The notes under the pieces were generated by a model. That model had not been told where the DNA came from. It worked only from the letters and a program-made list of their open reading frames with translations, and did no database searches. Both the position numbers and the translations under genes were made by a program. Below, piece by piece: positions 1 to 62,016 of a DNA stretch of 64,000 nucleotides (within the stretch, counting starts at the first letter, position 1; every line of letters starts with the position of its first letter). The DNA comes from Paramoeba atlantica (Eukaryota; Protista; Discosea), in the NCBI GenBank assembly GCA_977017575.1, contig CDRNVI010000070.1, positions 62,001-126,000 of the forward strand, written 5' to 3'.

Positions 1-1174
1 TCCCGGGGTCTCCTTCCCGCACGGCCACGTCGGGGGGAACCGGTGGCTGACGGCTGCGGCGTACCGCGTGCTGGAGCGTGCGTGCGGGACGGGGTGGCGC
101 GCGGCCTGGGGGTGCGGGCCGCGGTACTCCCCCGTGGTGGTGCCGGTGCCGTATGCGGTGGGGGAGGGGGAGGGGGAGGGTACGGGGGGAGGGGGAGGAA
201 AAACGGGGCAGGGGGTGGGAAACAAGATCAAGACAGGGGAAGGAGGGGGGTTAGAGGGGAGGGAGGAGAAAAAAGGAAAAAAGGGAAAGGGGAAGGGAAA
301 GAAGGGGAAAGGTGCGGTGGAGGGACGGGAGAGCGATCCCGCGAGTTGTGTGGGGGAGGATGTTTCGAGGTTTGCGCGTGGGGCGTATATGTATGACCCG
401 TGGGCGAATGAGATTGGGTATGTGCCGTGGGTGAATCCGATGACAATGTATCACTACCCTCGACGATATGCGCCCTATCTTGAGGATAGGGAAGACACGC
501 AGGACATTTTGAAATTCGCGTTGAAGTACGACAACGGCCGGTTCTGTTATGCGGATCAAAGGACAAAGAAAAGCAGTACCTCTGTGAAAAAGATAACGAA
601 GGAAACAGCGACACGAATCACAAGGAAAACAGATGAGAAGCAGAAACCCACTCCTCGCTCGCTGAAGAAGAAAGAAAAGACGAATCTGACGCTCCAGCAA
701 AAGAAAGCTCATGCGATGACGCTCAAAGATGAAAGTTTCGCATCAGAAAACACGTCTCCCGACCCTGCTTACACAAAGTCAAAGGATGTCTCAGTCGGAG
801 ACTCGAGTACAGCCATGATGAATTCGAAAGAGGGGTCTTTAAGTGAACAAGACGCATTGGTTTGCTCTCGCAAGAAAGCTCTTACGCCCGTGATGCGTTC
901 AAAAGCTTACGTCGTGTGGTTACATGTCATGAATCATCCTAAGCCTCCTTTTCAGCATTCTTATCTTCGAGATGTCAACGATGAAACGGAAGAGCAAGAA
1001 CTCTTCAAACTCGTTCATGAGATACCACAGAGGCCCGATCCAGAAAATACTTTGGTTGAAAAACCAACCTACAACTTGAATCTTCGACAGTGGAAGAAAT
1101 CATTACGCAAGCTTCAGCCGTTCATTGCCAGTAAGCCGCAAAAGGCTTCTGACGATTTGGAGATTAAAACATAA
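1..1174 (+). CDS. Hypothetical protein, 5'-truncated by the window edge; G/K/E-rich low-complexity segment and basic C-terminal half
   Basis: The frame of ORF 68..1174 is open from position 2 (PGVSFPHGHVGGNRWLTAAAYR...) to TAA at 1172-1174 and lies on the cluster strand; no family recognised. Confidence 0.6.
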   Translation, partial: PGVSFPHGHVGGNRWLTAAAYRVLERACGTGWRAAWGCGPRYSPVVVPVPYAVGEGEGEGTGGGGGKTGQGVGNKIKTGEGGGLEGREEKKGKKGKGKGKKGKGAVEGRESDPASCVGEDVSRFARGAYMYDPWANEIGYVPWVNPMTMYHYPRRYAPYLEDREDTQDILKFALKYDNGRFCYADQRTKKSSTSVKKITKETATRITRKTDEKQKPTPRSLKKKEKTNLTLQQKKAHAMTLKDESFASENTSPDPAYTKSKDVSVGDSSTAMMNSKEGSLSEQDALVCSRKKALTPVMRSKAYVVWLHVMNHPKPPFQHSYLRDVNDETEEQELFKLVHEIPQRPDPENTLVEKPTYNLNLRQWKKSLRKLQPFIASKPQKASDDLEIKT

Positions 1175-1560
1175 AAACTGTGAGTGAGAGGTAAACGTTC
1201 TGTTAGTGCATATTCAATTTTAAGATTGGACTTCTGTGAAGAGAGGAAAAAACAACATTTTTATTCGTGGAAAAATAACTTATTAATGAGAGACTTTCAC
1301 AAAGAGAAACTTATCTGAATGTTGTAAAGTGCTGTGCATTCATTGTTTTAATCGCATAATTTCTGTTCAATATTAGTTAAGTAGGAATCACTACCATCTT
1401 GACAAGCTAAAAACACACCATTGCTGTACATTCTATAGAGTATTACTTTTTCCCTAGTATTAGTGGATTGTTTACTACTCTAATAGATACCGTACATAAG
1501 AATCTTAAAGAGCTATAAATTGCACTTTCTGACACATTGCAGGTTTAAGATTTAAGATCC

Positions 1561-4335: not shown

Positions 4336-5108
4336 ATAGCTCTACTTTATGAGTCTTCGACATTGCCTGGTAAGAAAGGTTTCGTTTGGGCTAATTGCTC
4401 TCTTCATTCTACATATTATTTACTCTAACCTATGATTATAGGCTGCATAGATTTACCGATACACGTGTATTGTTATTAAAATCTACACATTGTCATTACC
4501 TTTACATAACTGTTTACCCTGAGAATATAGTCTATTTTTGTAACCTTTGGGCTGCAGAATTAGTATGCTTGTACATGGAACAATTTTTTAGAGCAATTTA
4601 CTTCAAAAAAATACCTTTTACTATTCAGTTCTCGTAATAGCTGTCAATTTTAAGCTTGGAAAAAACTTTCACGTGAGAACGATTAGGTCGATCGAGAGAT
4701 GTTACTTCGAACATTAAAATACTAAAAATTAGAGCAGATTTTGAGAACTAAAGTAAACAATATACTAAAATAAATTTTGCAACAGCATAACCAGCAAATT
4801 CTAATATCGACGCGACTTTTACTCTACACTATGCAGAAGTTAGGCGGGTTTTTAACCATGTTCTTCGTTAAATGCAACCGAATCACCGATTCAGATTTTT
4901 GGAATTGTATCGGGATTCATAAATACTGAATAAATTACTACTAAGTTCGTAAACCAACTCATACTGATTAGAAATATTTACTTAGAATATGACTGAACAA
5001 ATTAGAATGTGATTGTATGTAGCCGTGACTTACGCAACTATAGTTGAAAAATGTCAAATGTTTAGTGCATTGCGGAACGTCCCTAGTTAGCAGAGCGTCT
5101 GTTTTCAA

Positions 5109-8100
5109 ATGGAATGCGCAGAAGATGCTAAAGCGCGTACGGGGTACGGTACACGAACACTTACTATTTCAAGTGCGAGGGCGATTTCGCATGTTGATAA
5201 TCACATTATTGAATCACTTGAAAACTCCTGTACTACGGTTGGGGATCCTCTTAGAAATGCATTTCAGGCCCACGTTCACAGAGGTGATGGAAACACACCA
5301 ATTACACACGATTCAGAGAACATTGCATCGTGTGATAGTACTTTGACGCTCCTTCCAAGAACCTTAAAAAGTCATAATTCCTGGGATTCTTATAATTCTT
5401 ACGAAGCACAAGACCCGTTTGCCTATCTGCCCGAAAATATAAAACAGAGGATTAGAGATCGTGGTATTGCAAATCTCTATGATTGGCAGAAGGAAGTACT
5501 TACGCTTGAGGCAACAAGGCTAGAGAAAAATCTAGTTTACAGTTTACCTACAAGCGGTGGTAAAACGTTAGTAAGTGAAATACTTATTCTACGTCGCTTA
5601 CTTCGCCCGCGACATTCCGAGATTGCTAAATCACACACCCAAGAACTGTGCTATGAAGGTGCTTCGCAGAAAATGAACACCTCTGTGGCAGAGGTGAATT
5701 CCCTAGCAATGTATGTGCTACCTTATGTATCTCTGGTTGAAGAACGAGTAGAATCTTTCAGAAGCTTAGTGGATAATGAAAAAGGTGTTAATAGTGATCC
5801 GCTACTTACGAAGGAAGCCATAGTAGCGAACGGGACATCAATCTCGGTCGAGGCCTACGCGGGAGCTGCTGGACGCTATCCACCTCCAACCGCTCCTTCA
5901 GTTTTTGTTTGCACCATAGAAAAAGCAAGCGGAATGCTCAATACATTGTATGAGCTTGATCGTATTGATGAGTTGGGCATTGTAGTAATTGATGAGCTTC
6001 ACATGGTAAGTGAATGTAACGGAAGGGGTGCAGTGCTTGAAAGCTTTGTAGCTAGATTATTGGCAGGAGCTCCCCATGTGCAGATTGTTGGAATGTCAGC
6101 GACGGTTCCCAATCTCGAACATTTATCATCATGGATCTCTGCACACAAGTACAAGAATTTGTTTAGACCAGTAAAGTTAATGTCGTACACTGTTTCAGGA
6201 GGAATTGTGAAAAACGCGGGGTATTGTAGGGCTGATATTCAGATGCAGAAGCAGGAGAGCTTGGGCAGTGAAGAAAAAATGTTCGAAGACACCAACGAGA
6301 CAAAATCTTTGGAGGATACAACGTTTCAGAATAACGATGCTTTACCAGTACGAACTCTTACGCTATCAAATGCTTTAACTGAGAGGGAGCAAGTTCTTGC
6401 TTTGGTCGAGGAACTGTTCCTTGAAAGTGCGATCATAGTATTTTGCGCTACAAAGTTATCGTGTGAAAGCATGGCGACGTATTTAGCAAAGAAATTGTGG
6501 AACCGCCGTAAAAAAGAGGCAAGCAACATTTATGAAGAGCTTGACTTATCACTTCCCCAAGAATCCAAAGAAAACTACAGTGCCTTTGCCGACAAACTTG
6601 TTCGCTTACTCCCTTTTAGAGTTGGATACCATCACGGAGGTCTGACGGCGGACGAGCGTACATTTATAGAGAGCGCTTTCCGTTCAAAACGGATCTACGT
6701 ATTGTGTGCAACATCTACACTTGCCGCAGGCGTCAATCTGCCCGTTAGAAGGGTTGTATTCCACAGCCCGTATATCGGAAAGAATTTTTTGCGGAAGTCA
6801 CAATACCTTCAAATGTGTGGGAGAGCAGGCAGAGCAGGTCTGGATCCATACGGTGAGTCTTACCTCGTTCACAGCGCCAAGGACGCTCATCGAGTGCATA
6901 GCCTTGTTGCTGAAATTTCGGAGCCAGTCACCAGTGCTATTAGAAGTTGTCCTGGAATATCATCATGCTCAGATACAGGAAAGTTACAGAATACATTATG
7001 CCAATGGGATGCCGTACATGAGAATTATGATATTCAACTCGAATACGTACTTAGCCGCTATTTGTTAGAAATAGTGGGTTGCGGAATCGCTAAAAGCAGT
7101 CATGGAATGCTTGAATCCGTTAAACAATTATTGTGTTGGAAGGAAGATGAATTACTAATTTCTCGCAAAACGTTAGATGCGCTACGCTTATTAGAAGAAA
7201 ACAAGTTATTTCATAAGGTCGCGATAGGAGGACGAACGACAACAGAATACGCTAGCACACTTTCTCACAAGTATTCTACGGAGCGTGGCGCACCAGGGAC
7301 TCCAGATTACTTCACTAAACGTTCCGAATGTCGGAATTCGATTTATTGCAAATCAGCAGAATTCTACGAACTCTCACCTCTTGGCTTAAGTGTATTTCGA
7401 TCAAATTTGCCAATTCCTGATGCTTTACTCATACACTCGGAGATTGTAGATGTGCAGCGGAAAGGACTTATCATGGAAGATGATCTTCACATTGTGTATA
7501 TGTTAACCCCTATTCGCGATATGCTGGAGCCTCACTGGTCGACGTATCAAAGACGATTAAGCCATTTATCGGCTTTGCAAATGAACATTGCGGAATCTAT
7601 TGGTGTTTCAGAGCATTTCATTCAACTCCGGGCTTCAGGCATATGCTTGAACGTTGTTGAAGATAATTCGCTTCAGAACCCTACAGAAGGAAATAGGAAA
7701 AGTCCACACACATCCCGACGTGCTCATTTCGCAACCAGGCGCTTTTGGAGTGCTCTCATACTTTTCGATTTATTGCGCGAGGTTCCGGTAGATACTGTGG
7801 CGGAACGCTACAATATTCTACCAGGCCAAATACAAAACCTGATGAAGTCAGCATCTTTTTTCAGCACTTGCATGACCGCTTTTGCTCAAGCGATGGGATG
7901 GTATGCCTTGGAGTCTGTTCTGTCCGGATATGTGAAGCGGCTTGGATACGGTGTACGTCCGGATGTTTTACCACTTATGGCTATCAAAGGAGTACAAGCG
8001 ACTCGCGCACGGCTACTTTGGCAGGCAGGATACCGCACCATAAAACAACTTGCACAGTCAGATCCAGAAAAACTTCTTCAACGATTAAAGGAAACAAGCG

Positions 8101-8249
8101 CAAATCTTTTCAAAGGAAAAGATGGCTCAGCAAATGCAGTTAAATATCTTACAAAACGCAGTGCGTTAAAACTCATTCACTCTGCTCATGCATGCCTGAA
8201 AGAAACTACCTCTTCTAAATACGACGAAATTCGTGAGCTGAACTGTTAA
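5109..8249 (+). CDS. HELQ: HELQ/Hel308 (Pol theta helicase-like) SF2 DNA helicase, no polymerase domain
   Basis: LYDWQ, LVYSLPTSGGKTLVSE, DELHMV, GMSATVPN, YHHGGLT, TSTLAAGVNLP, QMCGRAGRAG, and a C-terminal HhH-like LMAIKGVQATRARLLWQAGY. Confidence 0.88.
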   Translation: MECAEDAKARTGYGTRTLTISSARAISHVDNHIIESLENSCTTVGDPLRNAFQAHVHRGDGNTPITHDSENIASCDSTLTLLPRTLKSHNSWDSYNSYEAQDPFAYLPENIKQRIRDRGIANLYDWQKEVLTLEATRLEKNLVYSLPTSGGKTLVSEILILRRLLRPRHSEIAKSHTQELCYEGASQKMNTSVAEVNSLAMYVLPYVSLVEERVESFRSLVDNEKGVNSDPLLTKEAIVANGTSISVEAYAGAAGRYPPPTAPSVFVCTIEKASGMLNTLYELDRIDELGIVVIDELHMVSECNGRGAVLESFVARLLAGAPHVQIVGMSATVPNLEHLSSWISAHKYKNLFRPVKLMSYTVSGGIVKNAGYCRADIQMQKQESLGSEEKMFEDTNETKSLEDTTFQNNDALPVRTLTLSNALTEREQVLALVEELFLESAIIVFCATKLSCESMATYLAKKLWNRRKKEASNIYEELDLSLPQESKENYSAFADKLVRLLPFRVGYHHGGLTADERTFIESAFRSKRIYVLCATSTLAAGVNLPVRRVVFHSPYIGKNFLRKSQYLQMCGRAGRAGLDPYGESYLVHSAKDAHRVHSLVAEISEPVTSAIRSCPGISSCSDTGKLQNTLCQWDAVHENYDIQLEYVLSRYLLEIVGCGIAKSSHGMLESVKQLLCWKEDELLISRKTLDALRLLEENKLFHKVAIGGRTTTEYASTLSHKYSTERGAPGTPDYFTKRSECRNSIYCKSAEFYELSPLGLSVFRSNLPIPDALLIHSEIVDVQRKGLIMEDDLHIVYMLTPIRDMLEPHWSTYQRRLSHLSALQMNIAESIGVSEHFIQLRASGICLNVVEDNSLQNPTEGNRKSPHTSRRAHFATRRFWSALILFDLLREVPVDTVAERYNILPGQIQNLMKSASFFSTCMTAFAQAMGWYALESVLSGYVKRLGYGVRPDVLPLMAIKGVQATRARLLWQAGYRTIKQLAQSDPEKLLQRLKETSANLFKGKDGSANAVKYLTKRSALKLIHSAHACLKETTSSKYDEIRELNC

Positions 8250-8529
8250 AAAATAATACAGATCATATCATTAAGACGTGAAGTGTGAATAGTAGCTCAT
8301 ACTAGAAATATAAGAATAGCCACGTCTGTTTTTCGGAAACACTATTCTTCAGATGAAAAATACTTGCCATTCGTATTAGAAATGCTGTATCGTTTACTTG
8401 AAATGACCCGTAAACAACGTACAATGGCATACTTCAAAGGCCTTTAATATTCAATATTATTGAACAATTTCACACTGTACCAAGGATAACTTGCTTTCTC
8501 AATATCATTTCTTAGCTTGTGAAAAAATA

Positions 8530-9435
8530 ATGAAACGTTTGATCACAAATCAACTTTCCGCCTTTAGAGTTGACAACTTTGGAAGCATTTTGCACCTCAA
8601 AGACGCTGTGATCTTGAGCTCAATTCGACATGGGAACATAAATAGTCGTTTGCGAAATGCAGAACAACAAAATCAAATTTTCCCGACGACCTACGATTTC
8701 GATTCCGAAAAGGCTGCTGCGACTCAATCATACACCTCCCTAGACTGCGTCATGGAGACCTCAATCGCACCACTGGGTTGGGGTTCTTGGCAGAGCTTAA
8801 AAGCCAGGGCTTCTTTGTGGATGTCTTTACGACGTCTTCGTGACCGTCGGCCGGATTTGACCAAAACGGTCATATTAGATCGTTATCTTCAATACAAACG
8901 TCTCAGCCACTCTCGAAACGATGCGGAATTAATGAATTTGGGACAGTTTACCACACCCGGGGAGGCCATGCGTCTGAGAGAGACGCGAAGCGCCGAACTG
9001 CGGAAAGTAAAAATGGGGTCAAAATGGCGTCACATGGCAATGACAGATAAAGTACCTGGAAACTACTTGTCGTCGAAAAGCAAAGATCCGCAAAATGGTG
9101 CCTCAAGCCACATATCCTCTGATGTATACTCACTTGAAGTTATTGAATTCACACCGATTGCTTCGTTTTATGGTTGTTTACCTCAGGAAGATTGGCTACA
9201 AATTACGTACTGCGTAAAGGGGTTGGAATACTTGGACGGAAAGCAGAAGCCAGAAAAAGTGCTGGAGTATTCTGTGATGGAATTTCGTTTGACCGATGGG
9301 ATTGTGCGCGCCAATGCATTTCCTCCCATTGTAGTAGCCGTCATGGATAGCACGGGTTGTCGCCACGGGCGGGATGGTATGGATGCAGTGCAGTTGCGGA
9401 AACAAATGAAACAAAAGCTTTTCTGGTCTGCTTAA
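8530..9435 (+). CDS. Probable mitochondrial Tim44-like / mL45-like domain protein
   Basis: ORF 8491..9435 with first ATG at 8530; C-terminal WLQITY...EKVLEYSVMEFRL resembles the Tim44/mL45 QxTV...VxEYxVfE pattern; basic N-terminus. Confidence 0.45.
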   Translation: MKRLITNQLSAFRVDNFGSILHLKDAVILSSIRHGNINSRLRNAEQQNQIFPTTYDFDSEKAAATQSYTSLDCVMETSIAPLGWGSWQSLKARASLWMSLRRLRDRRPDLTKTVILDRYLQYKRLSHSRNDAELMNLGQFTTPGEAMRLRETRSAELRKVKMGSKWRHMAMTDKVPGNYLSSKSKDPQNGASSHISSDVYSLEVIEFTPIASFYGCLPQEDWLQITYCVKGLEYLDGKQKPEKVLEYSVMEFRLTDGIVRANAFPPIVVAVMDSTGCRHGRDGMDAVQLRKQMKQKLFWSA

Positions 9436-9808
9436 AGTTTTGCAGCGGGCTATAAGGTACAGTAACAGATATTTTGGACAACAACGCGGACTGTATCAAG
9501 CCTTTCTAAGCCGGCCGTTTTCATCCATAAGTCTACTGTTATAGACTATAATAAGCTCGCCTTTTTAAAGTCATGCACTTGCAATATAGGCCAATAGTGT
9601 GCGTGTAATATTGCACAAATTCGGAACCCCATTGAATCGGGGGGATAGTAAATATATTACATGCATACATGTATAACGCGCATTAAATTCATGTTTATGT
9701 ATGCATGTCTAAAATGGATGTACTTTCCACGAACATACAGTTACATGTACATCCGATTTCTACTCATAATCCAACACAACCCTATGCCTTCGTTTTAAGA
9801 TCCGTGCA

Positions 9809-12514
9809 ATGTGGAACAAACTTTTATCCGACCGCCAAACGTTTTTCACCTCATTTCGGGGTGAGGCCTCCGATGAGCTCACGTGCTTTGTTGAAAACTT
9901 TTTGCAGCCCACTGCTCCATCTACAGAAAAGCGAAAGACCGCTCTAAGCTTCATCGAAAATTGTATTGAGCGCTGTGCGGTTCGTCTTGGTATTGAGAAA
10001 TCGAAAGTGAGCGTGCACTTGTTCGGATCATTTTATCATGGTACGTATCTTCCCGACGGCGACGTAGATATTACAGTTCGTTCTCCTTCAAGGAACGTAG
10101 TTGCACTGATGCATAGTTTGTACAGTACACTTGAGGAAGCCCAGATACCCGTAGAATTCGTCCAGGCTGAGGTCAAACTGCTGAAGTGTTACATTAACGA
10201 AATCTGTATTGACGTCACCTTTAATCAAGTTTTCGGCATTGTCACCGCGAGGTTGGTGCATCACGTTACAGAAATTGATCTTTTTCCTTCGAATTTAGTC
10301 AAACACAGCATTCTTTTGATCAAAGCTTGGGCGTATCACGAGACAAGAGTTTTGGGGGCAAATGGCGGATTATTGGGCACGTACGCCATAACAGTTATGC
10401 TTTTTTGCGTTCTGAACTCCTTATCTCAACATGTGCCCTTGCGTACGCTTACACCTCTGGAGTTGCTATCTCATTTTTTTGCCTTCTTCAGGGAGTTTTC
10501 GTTGCTTACGCATATTGTTACAGTGTACGGTAGCATTGCAAAATCAGCAGAATCCTCGGCGGAAAAACAAGAGACCCTAGGAACTGCATTTCAAAAAAAG
10601 ATCATAAGTCGAAACGATGTTCTAAGTTTTATGAGCCATTACGCATCTTTCTTGGACGAAAATATACCGTTGCTGTCGTCTACTCAGCCGGCATCAATAA
10701 ATTCGTCATCACATCAGTGCTCGTTCGAAGCGAATTCTCCATCACGTGAGTTGGACTCGCTGCCAGAGAATTCCAAAGAAGATTCAAGTACCACAGAAAA
10801 ATTACCAAGTATCACGGGAACAGCGCCGCCTCTAGAAGCGTACGTTACCGAAAGAGACGTCGCCCCGGACGGTACGAATCCTGACTATTCCTTCGAAATA
10901 ATTGACTCAAGACCGATAAATATTGCCGATCCTCTACGACCCGAAAGTAATCTCGCAAGAGGCATCCACAAGAGCCACGCACTCCGGATTCAGGAAGCGA
11001 TATCAAGAGCGGCCCATGTATTGGATCTAATTCTTCAGGAATATGTAGTGCATACCGACGAGAAAATATCATTACTTTCAAAAGTTGCTACAGTTCAGCT
11101 TAATCCTGTCGTCCAGCGAGACACTGTATATGAAGAAAGGACCGATATTTATAATAGAAACATTGCACCCTGCGTATCGAACGGCACGCCCCAGAAAATT
11201 TGTTCAAGCCCCATTTTAAAGTTTTTCAAGTGCACAGCTTATGCTTGTATTTTCAGCCAGAAATTGCTGAGTTTACGCGAAGCATCGGTTCATTCCTGTG
11301 ATATTCGAGGAGTGCGAAACAGCCGATCGAAAAGTACAGAAGCAAATGATGATTTAGAGGTGCCCGCATCTATATTATGTCCATCCCCACCGATGATTGG
11401 ACCATCTCCTTTGGACAAAAACTCGATAATTTGTGAGGAGGGTAATAACTATTTCGGAAGTGAAAACTCGCAGAGATATCCGCCCGCACTTGATTCACCT
11501 TCTGACGTGCGCATAGGTTATAGCATTCGAGATCATGATGTATCTAACAGTGAAGCGCCAAGATTGGGAATTGCGGCAAGAACGCCTGTTACACGAACCA
11601 CAAACAAGAATATCAATACAGACAGTAGTCACGCCATGCAGGCTCCTCTGTCGGCACATTCTCATAGTTTTATGCCCAATTTGCGCGACACATCTACCTG
11701 GCTTCATTCCCCTCCACAGCCCATGTTTGAACCTCCTTGGAACATCCAATCAAAGCACCTTCACCCTCCTCGTGCTCTGCCTGTGGAGAATTTTCTTAAT
11801 TCCTATTCGGGGACCATGCCTGCAGTCAATTTGAACAGCTTCGCTTGGACGCCACGGCATCCCGCTGGTGAGTTCAAACCACCCGTGACCCCAGGAGTTC
11901 CCCCATTCATTTATTATGGAACTCAAGATGAAACTTACCCCCATGGACCTGCGTGGGCCACGAACTACCCGCTTCCCCCTGCACATGTCAGAGACCCACA
12001 CAACCCGGTTCTTCACAACATGACCCCAAACCCCGTGTATTATGGAACACCCTTCCCCTACCCCTCGGGACAATCAGTACCATTTCCCCCCTCGGTTCCC
12101 GGCCCCATGTTCGAAAATCAACCCTTTAATGTGTTGGATCACGGATACGCCACCCATCGATACCCGAACTACTCCAGAGGGTACCGGTACAATAGGAACT
12201 CACGTTTTCATCACACCGCACGCCCCGGCGCTGTGAATCTTCCCACTCCCCCCGATAAGCAAGCCGTTGTGCCGGAGAAGGCAAACAGCAATGCAACGCC
12301 GACGAATTCAGAGTTGAATGTACAAAGCAATACACCGATGCAAGAACAAGGTTCTGAAGAAGAGCAAAAAGAAAGTGAATCAAACGAAGAAGAAACGATA
12401 CCGGCATCTTCTCAAAGGGGTACAACTTTGCATCCATTAAATGATCCGTCTAATTTGGAGGAAAAAAATCAGAGTGAAAAGAAATACGTGCCACCGCATC
12501 TCCGAAGGTCATAG
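9809..12514 (+). CDS. Non-canonical poly(A) polymerase-like nucleotidyltransferase (NT plus PAP/OAS1 substrate-binding domain) with long Pro-rich tail
   Basis: FGSFYHGTYLPDGDVDIT catalytic motif, AEVKLLKC..IDVTFNQ, SILLIKAWAYHETRVLGA..GLLGTYAI and NIADPLRPESNL, matching the plant/protist PAP-OAS1-like family. Confidence 0.85.
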   Translation: MWNKLLSDRQTFFTSFRGEASDELTCFVENFLQPTAPSTEKRKTALSFIENCIERCAVRLGIEKSKVSVHLFGSFYHGTYLPDGDVDITVRSPSRNVVALMHSLYSTLEEAQIPVEFVQAEVKLLKCYINEICIDVTFNQVFGIVTARLVHHVTEIDLFPSNLVKHSILLIKAWAYHETRVLGANGGLLGTYAITVMLFCVLNSLSQHVPLRTLTPLELLSHFFAFFREFSLLTHIVTVYGSIAKSAESSAEKQETLGTAFQKKIISRNDVLSFMSHYASFLDENIPLLSSTQPASINSSSHQCSFEANSPSRELDSLPENSKEDSSTTEKLPSITGTAPPLEAYVTERDVAPDGTNPDYSFEIIDSRPINIADPLRPESNLARGIHKSHALRIQEAISRAAHVLDLILQEYVVHTDEKISLLSKVATVQLNPVVQRDTVYEERTDIYNRNIAPCVSNGTPQKICSSPILKFFKCTAYACIFSQKLLSLREASVHSCDIRGVRNSRSKSTEANDDLEVPASILCPSPPMIGPSPLDKNSIICEEGNNYFGSENSQRYPPALDSPSDVRIGYSIRDHDVSNSEAPRLGIAARTPVTRTTNKNINTDSSHAMQAPLSAHSHSFMPNLRDTSTWLHSPPQPMFEPPWNIQSKHLHPPRALPVENFLNSYSGTMPAVNLNSFAWTPRHPAGEFKPPVTPGVPPFIYYGTQDETYPHGPAWATNYPLPPAHVRDPHNPVLHNMTPNPVYYGTPFPYPSGQSVPFPPSVPGPMFENQPFNVLDHGYATHRYPNYSRGYRYNRNSRFHHTARPGAVNLPTPPDKQAVVPEKANSNATPTNSELNVQSNTPMQEQGSEEEQKESESNEEETIPASSQRGTTLHPLNDPSNLEEKNQSEKKYVPPHLRRS

Positions 12515-54679: not shown

Positions 54680-54775
54680 ACGCACTGTAATATTCTTGGC
54701 ATCAACGCGACACTGGGAAAATCCTTTTAGATGAGACTAATTTCCATCAATCTATCTTCCGGTTTATATCTATAA

Positions 54776-55210
54776 ATGGCACATACGCCTACTGCAGCAG
54801 TATACGGCTTTATTGGTTGGGTGCTCAGCATATTCACCTTGCTTTCATTTTTGCTTTGGGCATTTGTTACTGACAGGCAACTTTCCGATACATTGGGAAT
54901 AACCTATTTTCCCGATAAATTGTGGGCACTTCGCTTTTCTTCCTTAATAGCAATGACGTTTGTGATATACGTTGTGATGTACGTAGGCTGTTCAATGTCT
55001 CAATTACCCGCTTTGGATGACCCGGTTAGCCTTGGACCACTACCGTGCAAGAAAGGCCACATGGACGGCTGTATGACATGTGCTTCGTGTCCAAACCATC
55101 GTCTTGAAGCTCCGAATGCAGTACCACCGCTTCTGGAGATTCCTCTCTGTGTCGTGAATAAGGAAATCATTTTCACAAAGAAGTCTGGTTGGGAAAAAGG
55201 GATCAGTTAG
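54776..55210 (+). CDS. PIGP: GPI-GlcNAc transferase subunit PIG-P
   Basis: VYGFIGW......FLLWAFV....LGITYFPDK.WA, two TM segments, and C-terminal VPPL.EIPL..VN. Confidence 0.85.
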   Translation: MAHTPTAAVYGFIGWVLSIFTLLSFLLWAFVTDRQLSDTLGITYFPDKLWALRFSSLIAMTFVIYVVMYVGCSMSQLPALDDPVSLGPLPCKKGHMDGCMTCASCPNHRLEAPNAVPPLLEIPLCVVNKEIIFTKKSGWEKGIS

Positions 55211-55594
55211 GAATATCTGATCGATTAATGTATTCGAGTCGGCTGCATTATGCAATGTTGCAAGCTGCGCGCAACGTTCTTCTCGTTAAGAGCAGAAGTT
55301 GTTTCTCAAAAATTTTGACCAATCGTCCAGAGGGAAGCATTACAGTATCCGCTTTTAGCACGCTCAAGTTATGGGGAATTGTGGCAAAAAAAGTTGACCA
55401 GGAACTGCGCCGTATTTTAAATATTTAATACTGTCCCCCCTCGCCTTATGCGCACCTGGTCAGACCCCCCGTTTAAGCGCACATAGAGTTGGGGTGCGGA
55501 CTCTGGCGCCGCAAAGGGTCGACTAATTTTTTTTATGTACTGATTCAGACCCCCCCGTTTAAGCGCACTTTCCACGGAAAACGAGGTGCCGCCC

Positions 55595-55841
55595 GCACAT
55601 TTATAATGCATACTAAGCGGCGCATTTATAATGCATATAGCACATTCAGATACATATTAGCATATTCACATGCATATAGCACATTCAGATGCATAACAGC
55701 ACATTCACATGCATAACAGCACAATCACATGCATATAGCACATTCAAATGCATATTTACTGCACATTGATAATGCATACTAAGCGGCACATTCACATGCA
55801 TAACAGCACATTCAGATGCATATAGCACATTCACATGCATA
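55595..55841 (+). repeat. Left subterminal array: about 12 copies of GCACATTCACATGCATA with 2-8 nt spacers
   Basis: Units counted by eye. Confidence 0.92.
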
Positions 55842-55842
55842 A

Positions 55843-55861
55843 TTCTACGTTTTTCTCTCAG
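55843..55861 (+). promoter_or_regulatory. Candidate trans-splice acceptor for the IS30 transposase
   Basis: ttctacgtttttctctcAG, followed by ctttctgtttca and ATG at 55874; no Shine-Dalgarno-like sequence before the ATG. Confidence 0.55.
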
Positions 55862-55873
55862 CTTTCTGTTTCA

Positions 55874-56872
55874 ATGGCACAATCAAAAAAGCGTATGGAT
55901 CATGAAGATCGCACTAAAATAGAGGTGCTATACATCCAGCAAGGTTTCTCGCAGGAGGAAATAGCCGCAAAGTTGTCTGTAAATCAGTCAACGCTGAACC
56001 GCGAGCTCACGAGAGGTATGCGTAACGGGGAGTATAATGCGAAGCGCGCGCAACGAGCGGCAAACACATCCATTTCCTCGCGGAAACACAAGCACCAGAA
56101 AATACAACGTGATGTGCAAGAGAAGGTGATTGCTTTGTTGGGGAAGAGATTTAGCCCACAGCAAATCGCTACAACTCTCTTTAAGGAAGATGGGGTAAAG
56201 ATTTCTCGTGTAGCCGTTTATGGATTCATCAAACGGGAAGACAGAGCAGGGAATTTAGTTCAGTTCCTGCGCCGGGGGGGAGGTCGCGGTAGAAGGCGAC
56301 GGGGTACAAATCGCCTGAAAATACCGAATCGAACTGACATAAGCGAGCGCCCAGGTTTCGTCAATACTCCCTCCAGATATGGAGATTGGGAGTGCGACTT
56401 GATTGAAGGCGCGCAACATAGTGGCTATTTTCTCAGTGTAGTCGAGAGAAAAAGCCGCTACGGAGTTCTTCGGAAGTTGGAGAACAAGAAATCAGAAATT
56501 GTGGCCGAGGAGGTCACTCGTGCTCTGCAGGGGTTCCAAGTTTTCACTATCACGTACGACAATGGAACCGAGTTCGCGAAACACGAACTAGTGAACGCTT
56601 CGTTGGGCTGTCAATCATTCTTTTGTCAGCCCTACGCAAGTTGGGAGAAAGGGGGCGTTGAAAATTTCAATGGTCTTGTTCGTGATTTCTACCCTAAGTG
56701 AACATCGTTCACCCACATCACGCTTGATACGACATCTGCAGCCATCAACGAACGACCAAAAGATATCCTGGAGAACAATTCGCCTATTGAATTGATCGAA
56801 AATATCAAGGTTATCGCCCCTCCTATGCTTCGTCCTCGTATTTTGATGGACAGCTCACAGGATTCGCAGTAG
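55874..56872 (+). pseudogene. IS30-family DDE transposase with a premature TGA at 56699-56701
   Basis: N-terminal HTH (SQEEIAAKLSVNQSTLNRELTR), FSPQQIA, GDWECDLIEG, VERKSR, TITYDNGTEFAKH, FCQPYASWEKGGVENFNGLVRDFYPK. After the stop the same frame continues TSFTHI...AINERPKDILE to TAG at 56870-56872, matching the IS30 PKGTDF...LNxRPRK pattern. Confidence 0.93.
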
Positions 56873-56952
56873 TACGCTCGGGTAGAATTCAAAGTGATTT
56901 TTTACTTCATTTATTGTGGGCCCCAAACAAATCTCAAGATACGTATGTACAA

Positions 56953-57170
56953 TTTTTTTTCATTTAGTACAGCACGTCCATAGCTCCGTTTTGCAGTTTT
57001 TCCCTCCTCCTATCTGATATTTCTGTGGTTTCTCTCAGTGACAAGTGTGCGATTTTTTCATCCAGACTATATGTGCGATTTTTTTCATTTACTACAGCAC
57101 GTCCACAGCTCCGTTTTGCAGTTTTTCCCTCCTCGTATCTGAGATTTCTGTGGTTTCTCTCAGTGACAAG
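56953..57170 (+). repeat. Two ~93-bp pyrimidine-rich direct repeats, period 125
   Basis: 56953-57045 and 57078-57170 (...tacagcacgtcc...ctccgttttgcagtttttccctcctc...gtttctctcagtgacaag). Confidence 0.9.
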
Positions 57171-57271
57171 CATATTTAATTATACTTCTTCATTAGAGGC
57201 TTCGCAAATTGCTTCCCACTAACGTCACACTCAGTGTCCCGGCCGGCCCCTCCGTGCGTTCGGCCTCTCAT

Positions 57272-57367
57272 ATTCCCCAAAACAACTATCACCTTCCCCC
57301 CATTTATCAGGGGTCGCTCGCGCGACCCCCGCTAAATAGGGGGGGAAGGTGGTAGTTGTGGGGTATG
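57272..57367. other. Long GC-rich imperfect hairpin inside the IS30 element
   Basis: acaactatcaccttcccccc..attta pairs with taaat..gggggaaggtggtagttgt; inner stem ggggtcgc/gcgacccc. Confidence 0.75.
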
Positions 57368-57459
57368 GAGGCCTCTCGCAACTCCGGGGCCTCACCGGGA
57401 GCAAAGGTGAGCACCCCGCACCAACTTTTCGAAAAAGTTGAAATCCGTGCCTAAAATTT

Positions 57460-57670
57460 TATGCATGTGAATGTGCTGTTATGCATGTGAATGTGCTATA
57501 TGCATGTGAATGTGCCGGATTTATGCATGTGAATGTGCCGATTAAATATGCATGTGAATGTGCATTATGCATGTGAATGTGCTGTTATGCATGTGAGTGT
57601 GCTATATGCATTTGAATGTGCCGCTTAGTATGCATTATAAACGTGCAGTTAATATGCATTATAAATGTGC
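57460..57670 (-). repeat. Right subterminal array: 10 copies of TATGCATGTGAATGTGC (reverse complement of the left unit)
   Basis: Units start at 57460, 57480, 57499, 57522, 57547, 57566, 57586, 57605, 57629 and 57653. Confidence 0.92.
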
Positions 57671-57975
57671 TAACGCCGGTGCGCTTAAACGAGGGGGCAT
57701 ATTTAATTTCAGTGCTTTTAGCTGACCATAAATGAAGGGTTCCTTCACTGACTTTCCGCAAATCATGTACTCTGAGATCGGCCCTAGTTTAAAGTGTTTT
57801 TCATTTATTTAAAGTGTATTTTTAAGAGTGCGTATGTATGGCGCACTAACGGTTAAAATGTCCGTGAACTTCCGTTCACTCGAATAAAGCTTTTGAGAAT
57901 CAAATAATTTCTATTGCTTGTTCGCAATACCCTCACTCTAAAAACAACCTTTTTTGTATAGTTTTTTTTTCTCGT

Positions 57976-59190
57976 ATGCAGTTCAGTGGATACAGAGTAT
58001 TTCCGGGTTTCTTGGGACATTCTGTCAGGAGTATTACTTCTCAGATCTCTGGGTGTCACACATGTAGCATAATTAAGAAATGGAATGAAGTCTTCCAACC
58101 TTTAATCCGGAATCGGAGTTCAGAATTCAACCGATTTCCTACTAAGCAGCACTATCTTTTGTTTCGCGATGTTGAAGACGAAATGATGCGTGGATGGGGA
58201 CCAGTGCGCGTCACTCGTTCGAGGCGTAGATTTCAACGCCTTTCACGAAGCAGACAACAGGAAGAGTCGAAGCAGGCTGCACAATCATTATTTGAAATGG
58301 CGCAGCAAATTACAAAAAATTTGCGCGAACAAACGGACCCGATGGAGGCCACGAAGCGAGTTTACCATGATGCCTGTCTTCGGCAGGTGCTTGCGGAAAA
58401 AACGGCAAATTTTTGGATGGCGAATCCACACGAAGTTCTTCCTCTTTATCGAGGCCTATGTGCAGGACTGGTAGAGGCTTTAGATGACCGTTCCGCCATA
58501 GAGCGACCCGAAGCGCGCTTTACTTCATCTCGATTTAATCTTAAGAAGCACTGGAGACTTGCCGCGGACCAAGTACTACTAAGAGGGCCTTTGTGTCAGG
58601 CGAAGCGATTTGGTTGCATGCTTCCGGATTTCCCCGCTTTTGTTCCTTGGCAAAAGCTTTTAACAACTAGTAGTGGTGATGTAGAAAATTCACAACTTTT
58701 AATGACGGAGTCGTCACCTTTTCTTGTGGTCACCGTATTTCTTAGCGAATTGAAGGCCTTGCAAGGAGGAATTCATATTGTTCCTGCATCTCATATAAAA
58801 TTAATCAGTTTAGGCAAAGAAGGAGATATTGGTAGCGTTGATGAACTTGGCCCTCATCCTTTTGTGCCAATGGGAAGTCATTTTAGGCGTCCGTATGAGG
58901 ATTGGTCACCGACAACGGACAGTGTAGAAACAATTTCGAGTCTTCCCGAAGGCAGTATTATTGTGACGCATCCTGCTACCCTATTTTCCCACGGCGTAAA
59001 TATGAGCAGTGACGACGTCAAGATGGTTCAGCTTCTGCTGATGGAAGATGGTCTCGCTGGCCCAGAATATCCGCACACTCAGCACAGTTGGTATAGTAAA
59101 TGGAAGGGACGTCATGTAGAACGTATAACACTAAACGCAGAGCACTTATTTCCTACTATTAACTTTTTGAAAAAAAACACTGAACTGTGA
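57976..59190 (+). CDS. PhyH-like (phytanoyl-CoA dioxygenase fold) protein, metal ligands apparently degenerate
   Basis: VTVFLSEL..LQGGIHIVPASH and EGSIIVTHPATLFSHGVNMS follow the PhyH pattern; the expected HxD position reads MLPDF. Confidence 0.55.
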   Translation: MQFSGYRVFPGFLGHSVRSITSQISGCHTCSIIKKWNEVFQPLIRNRSSEFNRFPTKQHYLLFRDVEDEMMRGWGPVRVTRSRRRFQRLSRSRQQEESKQAAQSLFEMAQQITKNLREQTDPMEATKRVYHDACLRQVLAEKTANFWMANPHEVLPLYRGLCAGLVEALDDRSAIERPEARFTSSRFNLKKHWRLAADQVLLRGPLCQAKRFGCMLPDFPAFVPWQKLLTTSSGDVENSQLLMTESSPFLVVTVFLSELKALQGGIHIVPASHIKLISLGKEGDIGSVDELGPHPFVPMGSHFRRPYEDWSPTTDSVETISSLPEGSIIVTHPATLFSHGVNMSSDDVKMVQLLLMEDGLAGPEYPHTQHSWYSKWKGRHVERITLNAEHLFPTINFLKKNTEL

Positions 59191-59382
59191 GACACTGAAC
59201 TGTAAGAAATACTCTGCATAAATAAATCCTTTCGGGATTGAGTGGTAAAGTTCGAAATATTGTTCCACATTAAACAATTTTAGCGTTGATAGGGGAAAAA
59301 AGGAAAGGCAGAGTTTCTTACTTATCTACAAACGTACTCTTGTTTGTTAGGAATTTTTTTTGGTATATTCTCCGTTGAAAGT

Positions 59383-62016
59383 ATGATTCCGCGCGTCAAG
59401 CTCAGCAGTGTAGCTCTTGTGCTCCTCTTCCTTTCGATAGGCGTGCACACTAATGTGGTAAAAGAGAGAATATTTGCTCCCGGTGTCCACGGAGATGATG
59501 CGCCGAGTGCCGACAAAGGTGGTGCTTATGCGTTTCAAACAGAGGTCGGAAAGATGCTGGATATCTTGATTAACTCTTTGTACACGAATCGATCAATTTT
59601 TTTGCGTGAAATCATTTCTAATGCATCCGACGCCTTGGATAAAATTCACTTTTTATATCTGACGGCTACCCAGACCCCGAAAAATGATCAAGGGAGGGAA
59701 CCAAAGATGGATATTCGCATCATTCCAAACAAGACCACAGGCATCCTAACTGTTCGAGATGGTGGAGTCGGCATGACGAAGGATGATCTTGCGAATAATT
59801 TGGGAACACTTGGCGCCTCTGGAACTAAGAATTTTCTTGAGAAATTGACTGACGGATCAACCACGGACGCGAACTTAATTGGCCAGTTTGGTGTTGGTTT
59901 TTATTCAGTCTTTCTCGTCTCTGAACGAGTTCGCGTTGCATCGAAGCACGACAACAGTGACACCCAGTGGGTATGGGAGAGCACTGGTGGAGCTTCAGGG
60001 AATCAGCAGTTTTTTATTTATCCAGATCCCCGCGGGAACACTTTGGGCCGAGGTACAGAGCTCACACTTGAGATTAAGAAGGATGCCCAGGAAGAATTCC
60101 TGGACGAAGATAATATTCGGGATATGATTCATCGATACAGTGAATTTATTCATTTCCCAATCTATCTTCGCAGCAACAGTACCGATCAAGGCATTGTACG
60201 AAAACGGAAGAAGGAGTTGGAAAAACGTCGAAAGAAGCAACAAAAGGGTTTAAAGATCAATATAGATGATGACGATGAAGAGGACGAAGATGAAGAGGAC
60301 GAAGATGAAGCGGTTAACGCAACAGGTGCCGAAGCGACTGATGCAGCTGCAGGAAACATCACTAAGACCAAGAAAAAGAAGAAGCACGTGGTAAGCGAGC
60401 TCGCCGACGAAGAAGGTGACGAGAATCCTACCGGAGAACTTGCATGGCAGCGTATTAATCAGCATGATCCGTTGTGGACGCGTAAACCAAGTACAATTTC
60501 TCTGAAGGATTATGCTAAATTTTACAAGTCGATTGCTCGTGATTTCGAGGATCCTATGTATCACACTCATTTTCAAGTAGAGGGAGAAGTAGACTTCAAG
60601 TCCGTACTTTACGTGCCGGAGAAAGCACCGAACTTGCAAATGGACAACCAAACCGCCACGAATATTCGCCTCTACGTGCGTCGAGTTTTTATCACAGATG
60701 AATTCAAGGATCTTTTGCCCCGCTATTTGAGTTTTGTTCGCGGCGTTGTGGACAGTGATGACTTACCACTGAATGTTTCCCGTGAACAACTCCAGGAGAA
60801 CCGTATTTTAAAAGTTATAAAAAAGAAACTAATGCGAAAAACGCTGAATATGTTCAACGAGATTGCTCAACGAGACAAGGAGCGACTCGAAGAGCAAGAA
60901 GAAAAAGATGCAGAAGAGGAAACACGGCGCGCAGCTCTAATTGAAGAGCACGGAGAAGAAGGGGCTGCGGAATTTCTTGGGAACACAACCAACGCGACTA
61001 AAAAGTTCAAGCCTCTCTATCCCAAATTTTGGGAAAACTTCGGACGAAATATTCGCCTAGGAATTATCGACGATAGCGCACATCGCACTCGCCTTGGGAA
61101 ATTACTACGCTACAAAACGAGCAAGTCGAACGGAACTATGATTCCTCTTGAAGACTATTTGGGGAGAATGCAAAAAGATCAACGATTCATTTTTTGCGCT
61201 TTGGGAGAGAGTGAAAAGAAGTTGATGCAGCTTCCAGTCGTACGTGACGCCCTCAGTCGAGATCTTGAAATTGTGTATATGACGGATGCTATCGATGAAT
61301 ACGTCGTTCAGAACCTCCATGATTACGATGACAAGAAGCTGGTGGATCTTACAAAAGAAGGCATTCGGTTCGAGGATCTCTCTCGCGAAGAAAAGAAAAT
61401 TGAAAAAAAGCGTAAGGAATATTTTGAACCTTTTACCAAGTGGTACAAAGACCTACTGGGCGATCGAGTTCTAAAAGTAATGCTATCGACCCGCAGCAAC
61501 GTTCGTGAACCGGTCCTTGTAACTTCGCCTTCCCATGGTATTTCGGCTAATATGGCCCGGATTATGAAGAACCAGCCTCTTAGTGACAAGGGTAACAACG
61601 CAACTGACGCAAAGCAACTTGTGGGTTTGAACATCTTTCATCCACTGATGGAAAAAATCCGACACATGGTGAACGCAACTGAGGAAAGCGAACGCGAGCT
61701 CGCCGCTGATGCCGCCATAGCGTTGTATGAAACCGCAGCGTTGCAGAGTGGTTTTGAAATCGACGACACCGATGGTTACGCGAGACGCGTCTTGCACATG
61801 ATCACAGAAGGCATGTCTGTGAGGGTCGACGCCCCGTTGCTAAAAGAAGATATTTCGAAATATTCTTGGGACGACGAGGAGGACAAGAAAGATGATGATT
61901 ATGTTTGGCGCGATTCTGAAGGCCGTCGACCTCGCCGACGTAAATTCGGAAAGAACAAGAAGGGCGAAAGCGCAGAAGAGAAGGAGGAGACAAAACCAAC
62001 GGATGAAGAACTCTAG
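59383..62016 (+). CDS. HSP90B1: ER Hsp90 / endoplasmin (GRP94, LPG3-like)
   Basis: Signal peptide from ATG 59383, FLREIISNASDALDK, D.GVGMTK.DL.NNLGT...SGT, IGQFGVGFYS, GVVDSDDLPLNVSRE, and a C-terminal DEEL retention-like signal. Confidence 0.96.
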   Translation: MIPRVKLSSVALVLLFLSIGVHTNVVKERIFAPGVHGDDAPSADKGGAYAFQTEVGKMLDILINSLYTNRSIFLREIISNASDALDKIHFLYLTATQTPKNDQGREPKMDIRIIPNKTTGILTVRDGGVGMTKDDLANNLGTLGASGTKNFLEKLTDGSTTDANLIGQFGVGFYSVFLVSERVRVASKHDNSDTQWVWESTGGASGNQQFFIYPDPRGNTLGRGTELTLEIKKDAQEEFLDEDNIRDMIHRYSEFIHFPIYLRSNSTDQGIVRKRKKELEKRRKKQQKGLKINIDDDDEEDEDEEDEDEAVNATGAEATDAAAGNITKTKKKKKHVVSELADEEGDENPTGELAWQRINQHDPLWTRKPSTISLKDYAKFYKSIARDFEDPMYHTHFQVEGEVDFKSVLYVPEKAPNLQMDNQTATNIRLYVRRVFITDEFKDLLPRYLSFVRGVVDSDDLPLNVSREQLQENRILKVIKKKLMRKTLNMFNEIAQRDKERLEEQEEKDAEEETRRAALIEEHGEEGAAEFLGNTTNATKKFKPLYPKFWENFGRNIRLGIIDDSAHRTRLGKLLRYKTSKSNGTMIPLEDYLGRMQKDQRFIFCALGESEKKLMQLPVVRDALSRDLEIVYMTDAIDEYVVQNLHDYDDKKLVDLTKEGIRFEDLSREEKKIEKKRKEYFEPFTKWYKDLLGDRVLKVMLSTRSNVREPVLVTSPSHGISANMARIMKNQPLSDKGNNATDAKQLVGLNIFHPLMEKIRHMVNATEESERELAADAAIALYETAALQSGFEIDDTDGYARRVLHMITEGMSVRVDAPLLKEDISKYSWDDEEDKKDDDYVWRDSEGRRPRRRKFGKNKKGESAEEKEETKPTDEEL

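Follow-up and report, generated by a model that had tools for sequence, protein, structure and literature searches.

An IS30-type transposase between inverted subterminal repeat arrays in a kinetoplastid-like nuclear genome

To our knowledge, only a handful of bacterial insertion sequence (IS) families have known eukaryotic descendants. When Gilbert and Cordaux (2013) screened 431 eukaryote genomes with all IS families, only IS607 was retained (PMC3673617), and the list of IS-to-eukaryote links compiled by Kojima and Bao (2023) is without IS30, while further 'ISxEU' groups are predicted there (PMC10045372). In kinetoplastids, the first DNA transposons reported were Merlin relics devoid of ends (Lopes et al. 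2021; PMC8101967). Bacterial IS30 elements move by copy-out-paste-in through a junction of their two inverted repeats (IRs) or a minicircle, and prefer near-palindromic hot spots or their own IRs as targets (PMC9333248). Here, we describe an IS30-type element in a 64,000-nucleotide stretch (hereafter the window; positions 62,001 to 126,000 of contig CDRNVI010000070.1, assembly GCA_977017575.1, labelled Paramoeba atlantica). It is highly probable that this element is an inactivated copy of a DNA transposon family which stems from bacterial IS30, entered the nuclear genome of a deep-branching, kinetoplastid-like euglenozoan, proliferated there and split into subfamilies.

Transposase, paralogs and bacterial relatives

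The transposase frame lies on the + strand and extends from an ATG at 55874 to a TAG at 56870-72, comprising 332 codons including one in-frame TGA (56699-56701). The pieces on either side of the TGA were searched separately, never as a read-through protein. The 275/288-aa piece before the stop scored 209.6 bits with the NCBIfam model NF033563 'IS30 family transposase' (cutoff 80), and lower with the sister-family models IS481 (61 bits, cutoff 224) and IS21 (36 bits). Pfam placed HTH_38 at residues 19-61 (32.4 vs. a cutoff of 27), a second, homeodomain-like helix-turn-helix (HTH) domain, HTH_32, at residues 82-129, and rve at residues 184-268, slightly under cutoff. When the protein was aligned with its paralogs and bacterial IS30s, the catalytic triad proved complete and located entirely 5' of the stop, in columns conserved with the bacterial members: the first D lies in GDWECDL, the second in TYDNG and the E in VENFNG, 33 residues separating the last two. 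The same domain order (HTH_38, second HTH, DDE) is found in E. coli IS30 and in the Verrucomicrobiota members (loci L008-L031, e.g. L020-L022), and the IS30-type motifs GDWE.DL, TYDNG.EF and WEKG.VEN.NG are common to the window transposase and bacterial IS30. The results demonstrate that the gene belongs to the IS30 family.

The 56 codons after the stop match the C-terminus of an intact paralog (E-value 1e-10), and the interruption is therefore not a frameshift. CGA stands in place of TGA in L004, the nearest paralog (96-98% nucleotide identity), which also has three extra codons 20 nt downstream; this indicates a single nonsense change in the window copy. Logan unitigs of four other sequencing runs (X1-X4, same organism label) were placed on positions 54700-58300; those with C at 56699 (runs X2 and X3) share the other differences of the paralog and thus derive from it, and the window version of the codon was covered by none. 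As the TGA lies 13 codons past the catalytic E, no full-length transposase would be made from the window copy, which by its sequence is a dead pseudogene. Its GC content at third codon positions (GC3) was 0.51, compared to 0.39-0.46 for host genes and 0.41-0.71 for three bacterial relatives, a composition that fits long residence. In the alignment, a C-terminal tail, (L/F)(L/V)(V/M)DSSQ(E/D), is common to the eukaryotic copies and present in no bacterial member; this tail may resemble a SUMO-interaction-type motif.

A homology search yielded matches of 57-89% identity, followed by a drop to 47% or less. All matches above the drop, along with an outlier at 44% (P0063) and two fragments from a profile search, lie on other contigs of ENA assembly ERZ24900291, while the other matches at or below 47% are bacterial or metagenomic, the named ones being Verrucomicrobia metagenome-assembled genomes (MAGs). 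At least ten diverged paralogs, with 39-89% amino acid identity, are thus present in the same assembly, next to reverse-transcriptase, DDE_Tnp_4 (Harbinger-type), hAT-dimerisation and DDE_3 genes. The clade is limited to this assembly: a profile of the eukaryotic copies found no member from another source among 1.84 billion representative proteins, the next best matches residing on short metagenome contigs or in dense bacterial-type contexts. Between pairs of intact paralogs, with the window copy outside the comparison, the proportion of synonymous differences (pS) was 0.82-0.88, i.e. saturated, and that of nonsynonymous differences (pN) 0.27-0.45, which indicates long divergence under protein-level constraint and thus purifying selection between the subfamilies.

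Two quick maximum-likelihood (ML) trees were built, with support from the Shimodaira-Hasegawa-like approximate likelihood-ratio test (SH-aLRT). In the tree with the 110 nearest matches, eight copies formed one clade (support 99), to which P0063 attached at 97 by what was flagged as a long-branch join. In the other, which included translated loci from prokaryotes and viral contigs (30 in all), support was 82 for the clade and 100 for its core. Its sister, with a joint support of 99, is a group dominated by Verrucomicrobiota; the clade is nested in wider IS30 diversity, and the two together stand apart from Neisseria-, Bacteroidota- and archaeal-type IS30s. The phylogeny envisaged in the original prediction, which had been made from the sequence alone, was thereby obtained as regards a eukaryotic clade inside bacterial IS30 diversity, in trees that hold no ISfinder references. 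On this placement, the ancestor of the transposase would be most similar to Verrucomicrobiota IS30.

When one genome per species was scanned for 185,579 bacterial and archaeal species, the nearest matches reached 42-51% identity, with none above ~45% over the full length. Nothing pointed to a viral vector, viral contigs giving only distant IS30 matches (27-40%), in prokaryote-virus-like contigs. Among bacterial relatives with several copies, the closest, from a Verrucomicrobiae MAG (42% identity), is present in three identical copies of 1,214 bp each, with ~25-bp imperfect IRs, clean 3-bp target-site duplications (TSDs; CTG, ATA and GTT) and no arrays. Thus, among the genomes scanned, the repeat-flanked element was not found in a bacterium, an outcome on which the original prediction had staked its claim.

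Ends, subterminal arrays and internal repeats

With its ends set by a 9-bp direct repeat, the element measures 2,269 bp (55430-57698), of which the 996-bp open reading frame (ORF) makes up 44% (Table 1). The 18-bp terminal motif CCCCCCGTTTAAGCGCAC occurs at 55465 and 55551 (+) and, inverted and with one mismatch, at 57679-57696 (-), in addition to a degenerate copy at 55438. The array units are of two variants, one 16 and the other 17 bp long, and had zero occurrences elsewhere in the 64 kb (fuzzy scan; chance expectation 0.07), and no part of the element was repeated elsewhere in the window. The original prediction had described an IS30 transposase of 332 codons with HTH, complete D-D-E triad and one TGA, in an element of about 2.3 kb at 55429-57698 with a repeated terminal motif and 12+10 inverted 17-bp repeats; all of this was recovered, the coordinates to within one base and the array counts exactly.

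Bacterial IS30s are alike in having a single ORF and short inverted terminal motifs. In size, however, the window element (2.27 kb vs. 1.21 kb) does not conform to a compact, ORF-filled IS of 1.0-1.25 kb, and at its ends 12+10 subterminal, binding-site-like units and three left terminal motifs stand against the single ~25-bp IR of bacterial IS30. A further difference concerns the TSD, which is 3 bp in the bacterial copies. The G/C-run ends of the window element showed no matching 2-3 bp, again for one insertion, and the 9-bp candidate ATATTTAAT was equalled in 15 of 2000 shuffles of the 56-nt flanks; as it represents a single insertion of the subfamily, it is tentative. No TSD above chance was found in L005 or L006. 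The insertion flanks TTAAATATTTAA form a palindromic, AT-rich site, a single case that recalls the near-palindromic hot spots of IS30 (PMC9333248).

Inverted arrays on both sides of the ORF were found in the window, L003, L005 and L006, and a left array in L002, whose right end is lost at the contig end. The unit sequences follow the transposase tree, with GCACATTCACATGCAT, GCACATTGATAATGCAT and GCACACTGATAATGCAT in the window clade compared to GCACCCTTATCTGTCAT in L003 and TGCACCTTTATATTGCATA in L007, such that the units of the window, L005 and L002 cluster together against those of L003 and L007, as the proteins do. This co-variation of array and transposase is the behaviour that cognate binding sites would show. 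The compact L006 appears intermediate in architecture between bacterial IS30s and the array-rich copies. L007 was also considered as an empty-site comparison and set aside, the seeming insertion that splits a palindrome being a complex nested arrangement with no clean empty/filled pair.

The signs of mobility are indirect. In run X1, the left terminal region was present at 12-20x flank depth and the ORF at 1-2x, which indicates that this end is multi-copy in the genome. Loose unitig ends elsewhere carried the terminal motif, ~20 nt, its inverse and then unrelated AT-rich DNA, and such loci represent a mini-element of two ends. The joining of two termini ~20 nt apart is at the same time a hint toward an IS30-type end junction.

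The imperfect palindrome and the 33-nt block in the right half of the element behaved differently from the arrays. Both show 97-100% identity from locus to locus where identity between the transposases is only 57-64%, the palindrome being 97-98% identical between window 57237-57400, L003 7963-8127 and L002 7392-7542. It reached ~100x flank depth in X1 and far more in X3, and groups of three lie apart from any IS30 ORF (L099/L100 9480-10327). The palindrome has thus not diverged in step with the elements, and could be either an independent repeat resembling a miniature inverted-repeat transposable element (MITE) with a preferred site in them, or a module homogenised by conversion. For the palindrome, a permissive Rfam search (56880-57460) returned nothing beyond generic hairpin (miRNA-precursor) matches below threshold; the whole window had no Rfam match at the gathering threshold, and a tRNA scan found no genes. 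The 101-bp tandem repeats that hold the 33-nt block (L002 7555-7881; L098 7230-7461 and 8611-8800, with inverted copies ~1.2 kb away) look like ends of another foldback-type element.

The direct copies at 56954-57170 are conserved in part in L001, L003 and L005, and their pyrimidine tracts are comparable to the tract in the kinesin/PIG-P spacer. The 12-mer GCATATTTAATT occurs at 57170, inside the element, and again at the right end (57697), for which we have no explanation.

Table 1. Features of the IS30-type element in the window and of related copies at other loci of the assembly
Locus	Feature	Position	Strand	Remarks
Window	Candidate TSD, left (ATATTTAAT)	55421..55429		9-bp direct repeat abutting element
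Window	Left terminal region	55430..55594	+	three 18-bp terminal motif copies (55438 degenerate, 55465, 55551)
Window	Left subterminal array	55595..55840	-	12 units, ATGCATGTGAATGTGC type and ATGCATTATAAATGTGC type, ~20-bp period
Window	Short pyrimidine tract ending AG	55846..55861	+	12 nt 5' of ATG; candidate trans-splice acceptor, predicted from sequence
Window	Transposase part before stop	55874..56698	+	275 aa; HTH_38, second HTH, D-D-E
Window	In-frame TGA	56699..56701	+	CGA at same codon in closest paralog L004
Window	Transposase part after stop	56702..56872	+	56 codons plus TAG; ends in clade-specific tail ...LMDSSQDSQ
Window	Two direct copies	56954..57170	+	92 nt, 96% identical, 125-bp period; each a pyrimidine tract then AG
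Window	33-nt block	57198..57230	+	recurs 94-100% identical in other loci, often within 101-bp tandem repeats
Window	Imperfect palindrome, ~165 nt	57237..57400		DNA fold -61.6 kcal/mol, z -9.45; high-copy in genome
Window	Right subterminal array	57461..57670	+	10 units, inverted relative to left array
Window	Right terminal motif and element end	57679..57698	-	one mismatch to left copies
Window	Candidate TSD, right (ATATTTAAT)	57699..57707		9-bp direct repeat abutting element
L003	P0004, 57% to window copy			8 left + 2 right inverted units of GCACCCTTATCTGTCATAA
L005	P0005/P0007, about 70% to window copy			GCACATTGATAATGCATA both sides
L002	P0003, 64% to window copy			24 left units of GCACACTGATAATGCATAAT; right end off contig
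L007	P0012			right array of TATGCAATATAAAGGTGCA units; no left array identified
L006	P0063, 44% to window copy	7843-9257		compact, ~1.4 kb; 3 left + 2 right ~26-bp units

The paralogs lie among other mobile elements. In L004 (1226-5296; L099/L100 ~880-4950), the closest paralog is split, at a site matching window 56391-56398, by a ~4-kb insertion which encodes a 660/997-aa DUF6729 protein and has about 8 bp duplicated on both sides; judged by these features, it is probably another transposon with an 8-bp TSD. In two contigs (L002 3832-4902; L098 3621-4793), IS30 copies belonging to one subfamily are preceded, at a distance of ~200-1100 bp, by a DDE_Tnp_4 (Harbinger/PIF-type) gene, reflecting either a duplicated segment or a repeated association. 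The 28.9-kb ctg3742c (L004, L099, L100), circular by name, contains twice a ~12-kb unit of IS30 fragment, DUF6729, DDE_3 and palindromes, and could have arisen when a tandem repeat was closed into a circle during assembly. In L001, an RVT_1 reverse-transcriptase ORF of 1,528 aa (8841-10124) adjoins the IS30 copy; this ORF and the hAT, Harbinger and DDE_3 genes of other loci point to a genome unusually rich in transposons for its lineage.

Chromosomal residence and alternative readings

The element lies between PIG-P upstream (Pfam, 68.7 bits) and a 404-aa ORF downstream, on the same strand as kinesin (Pfam, 259 bits) and an ER-type HSP90 (533 bits). The 404-aa ORF had no Pfam match, and its language-model neighbours are PhyH dioxygenases; the predicted position between PIG-P and a PhyH-like gene on the host strand was hence correct. 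The left junction was crossed by contigs of 6.7, 9.5 and 3.6 kb (X1, X2 and X4), leading from the host flank to 55487/55491, and the right junction by contigs of 5.9 and 6.3 kb (X1 and X2), which reach from the right flank back to 57648/57650. In X1, the depth of the ORF (94-134) was similar to that of the flanks (93-103). The element is therefore integrated in eukaryotic chromosomal DNA and is not a contaminant: unitigs built from other runs span its junctions, its depth is at flank level and its neighbours are eukaryotic, so that the junction and coverage check proposed at the outset came out in favour of integration.

The host was assessed through the HSP90 (GRP94/LPG3 homologue, ending ...DEEL; window 59344-62016), whose named relatives come from Bodo saltans (48%), Trypanoplasma, trypanosomatids, Perkinsela, diplonemids and Euglena. 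A quick single-gene ML tree placed it with Perkinsela (Prokinetoplastina; SH-aLRT 90), on a long branch. This favours a host close to Prokinetoplastina over a trypanosomatid or Bodo. On these sequence grounds 'kinetoplastid-like euglenozoan' is a fair label and 'trypanosomatid' is not; the kinetoplastid host named in the original prediction holds to that extent, on a single-gene tree.

Several observations weigh against a transposon family that proliferated in this nucleus. Several copies are broken, with stops or frameshifts in most, and one of them, P0002 (L001 3102-4124), has an open frame of 340 aa in which the catalytic E is replaced by K (VKRFNG), lacks arrays and is either an old relic or possibly a co-opted copy. 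The host assignment comes from one long-branch protein, and contig names in hifiasm-meta style leave room for more than one organism in the assembly. The unitigs showed neither an empty site nor an insertion polymorphism or excision footprint, and in no run was there a joint skipping 55430-57698. The TSD candidates are a 9-bp repeat from one insertion and an 8-bp one in L003 that was not significant. The only RNA-labelled run contained none of the sampled words, and thus gave no support for expression or trans-splicing. Acquisition and adaptation, as originally proposed, are consistent with one diverged clade beside Verrucomicrobiota and its arrays, and the expected further copies are at hand in at least ten paralogs, some intact; mobilisation, by comparison, is suggested by copy number and diversification, with the window copy dead, no empty site and the 9-bp candidate as the only TSD.

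Four alternatives were weighed. The one that fares best, although we regard it as unlikely, is that the element is real but belongs to an already catalogued eukaryotic superfamily, described in Repbase, Dfam or a paper. Related integrase-like groups are known (IS3EU, IS481EU and Ginger), and the comparison covered the literature. Against this, the IS30 model clearly outscored IS481 (209.6 vs. 61 bits), the 2023 list of IS-to-eukaryote connections is without IS30 (PMC10045372), and a full-text literature search, with Repbase and Dfam outside it, found no match for 'IS30EU', no paper joining IS30 with a eukaryotic transposon and no eukaryotic IS30 lineage, such as the original prediction had allowed for.

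A one-off transfer that never transposed in the eukaryote, in the manner of IS607 or IS5 relics, with unrelated satellite DNA as the surrounding repeats, is a good deal less likely still. It would agree with a pseudogene in the window, with the missing empty site and with reported prokaryote-to-eukaryote transfers being mostly IS fragments (PMC3673617). It does not agree with many diverged copies in one clade at saturated synonymous divergence (dS) and pN well below pS, with arrays inverted around the ORF in four loci and unit sequences that follow the transposase subfamily, or with termini 12-20x more abundant than the ORF. That the IS30-derived genes are domesticated host genes and not transposons is highly improbable: purifying selection between copies could be read this way, as could the open frame of P0002 without arrays or catalytic E, but stops or frameshifts occur in most copies, the copies sit between inverted arrays and terminal motifs, and copy number is high and variable. 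Finally, bacterial contamination or a chimeric assembly, in which the assembler joined the IS30 gene of a co-cultured bacterium to protist DNA, would be in line with the metagenome-style contig names and with IS30 being a bacterial family, but has next to no chance of being right given the independently built unitigs of other runs that cross both junctions at flank-level depth, at least ten copies on contigs with eukaryotic transposable element genes, no match above ~45% over the full length among the 185,579 prokaryote species genomes and no sigma-70-like promoter upstream of the ORF on the + strand.

Proposed working and relation to described transposons

An IS30-derived transposon family that proliferated in the kinetoplastid-like genome could work as follows. 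The N-terminal HTH domains would bind the ~20-bp units (core GCAC...ATGCAT), which are inverted and number 2 to 24 per end, and the DDE domain would cleave the G/C-run ends. If IS30 is a guide, transposition may proceed through a joined-ends or circular intermediate, by copy-out-paste-in. The elements would have no promoter of their own and would probably be expressed from read-through polycistronic transcription by means of the pyrimidine-AG signals 5' of the ATG and in the 3' repeats. The window copy would at best be movable in trans.

Beyond size, ends and TSD, the window element differs from bacterial IS30 in the C-terminal tail of the eukaryotic clade, the pyrimidine-AG tracts and the eukaryotic chromosomal setting. 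The arrays have a counterpart in CACTA/En-Spm, Ac/Ds and foldback elements, in which many short, inverted repeats of the transposase-binding type lie inside both ends. The transposases of those elements are unrelated to the IS30 type, and the likeness would be purely architectural.

A closer parallel is offered by the ISxEU/MILET groups, in which a prokaryotic IS family gave rise to a lineage-restricted, monophyletic eukaryotic group near one bacterial sublineage, with non-autonomous derivatives and a TSD length off the bacterial norm (PMC10045372). The window family likewise resides in eukaryotic chromosomes and is monophyletic next to one prokaryotic sublineage, and it comprises several subfamilies with their own arrays, candidate termini and TSDs, and termini in excess over ORFs. 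In contrast, those ISxEU groups have another parent family and live in parabasalids, animals and plants, compared to Euglenozoa here, and long subterminal arrays are not described for them in the text examined (PMC10045372). The Merlin relics of Bodo saltans and Perkinsela also have a transposase related to a bacterial IS (IS1595), also occur in early-branching kinetoplastids and are absent from trypanosomatids; they have, however, neither terminal inverted repeats nor TSDs and are considered old elements that no longer move (PMC8101967), whereas the window family keeps ends, arrays and subfamilies. Taken in this company, the family looks like a new 'ISxEU'-type lineage of eukaryotic transposons. 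We lean slightly towards the further view that it represents an uncatalogued superfamily, 'IS30EU', in which a deep-branching kinetoplastid, feeding on bacteria or living as a parasite, would have acquired a Verrucomicrobiota-type IS30. Rebuilt for the nucleus, the element would have gained arrays, a eukaryote-specific C-terminal tail and a longer TSD, would rely on polycistrons and trans-splicing, and is possibly active through intact copies such as P0003 and P0004.

Each link between an IS family and eukaryotes shows how a prokaryotic element passes the transcription and compartment barrier, and IS30 is a well-studied copy-out-paste-in family of which a eukaryotic branch has so far been unreported. 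With the bacterial sister group, the compact L006 and fully 'eukaryotised' copies available side by side, the steps of adaptation, i.e. the gain of binding-site arrays, the change of TSD, the new C-terminal tail and the splice signals, become directly readable. An active member, if there is any, would in addition be a candidate genetic tool for kinetoplastids.

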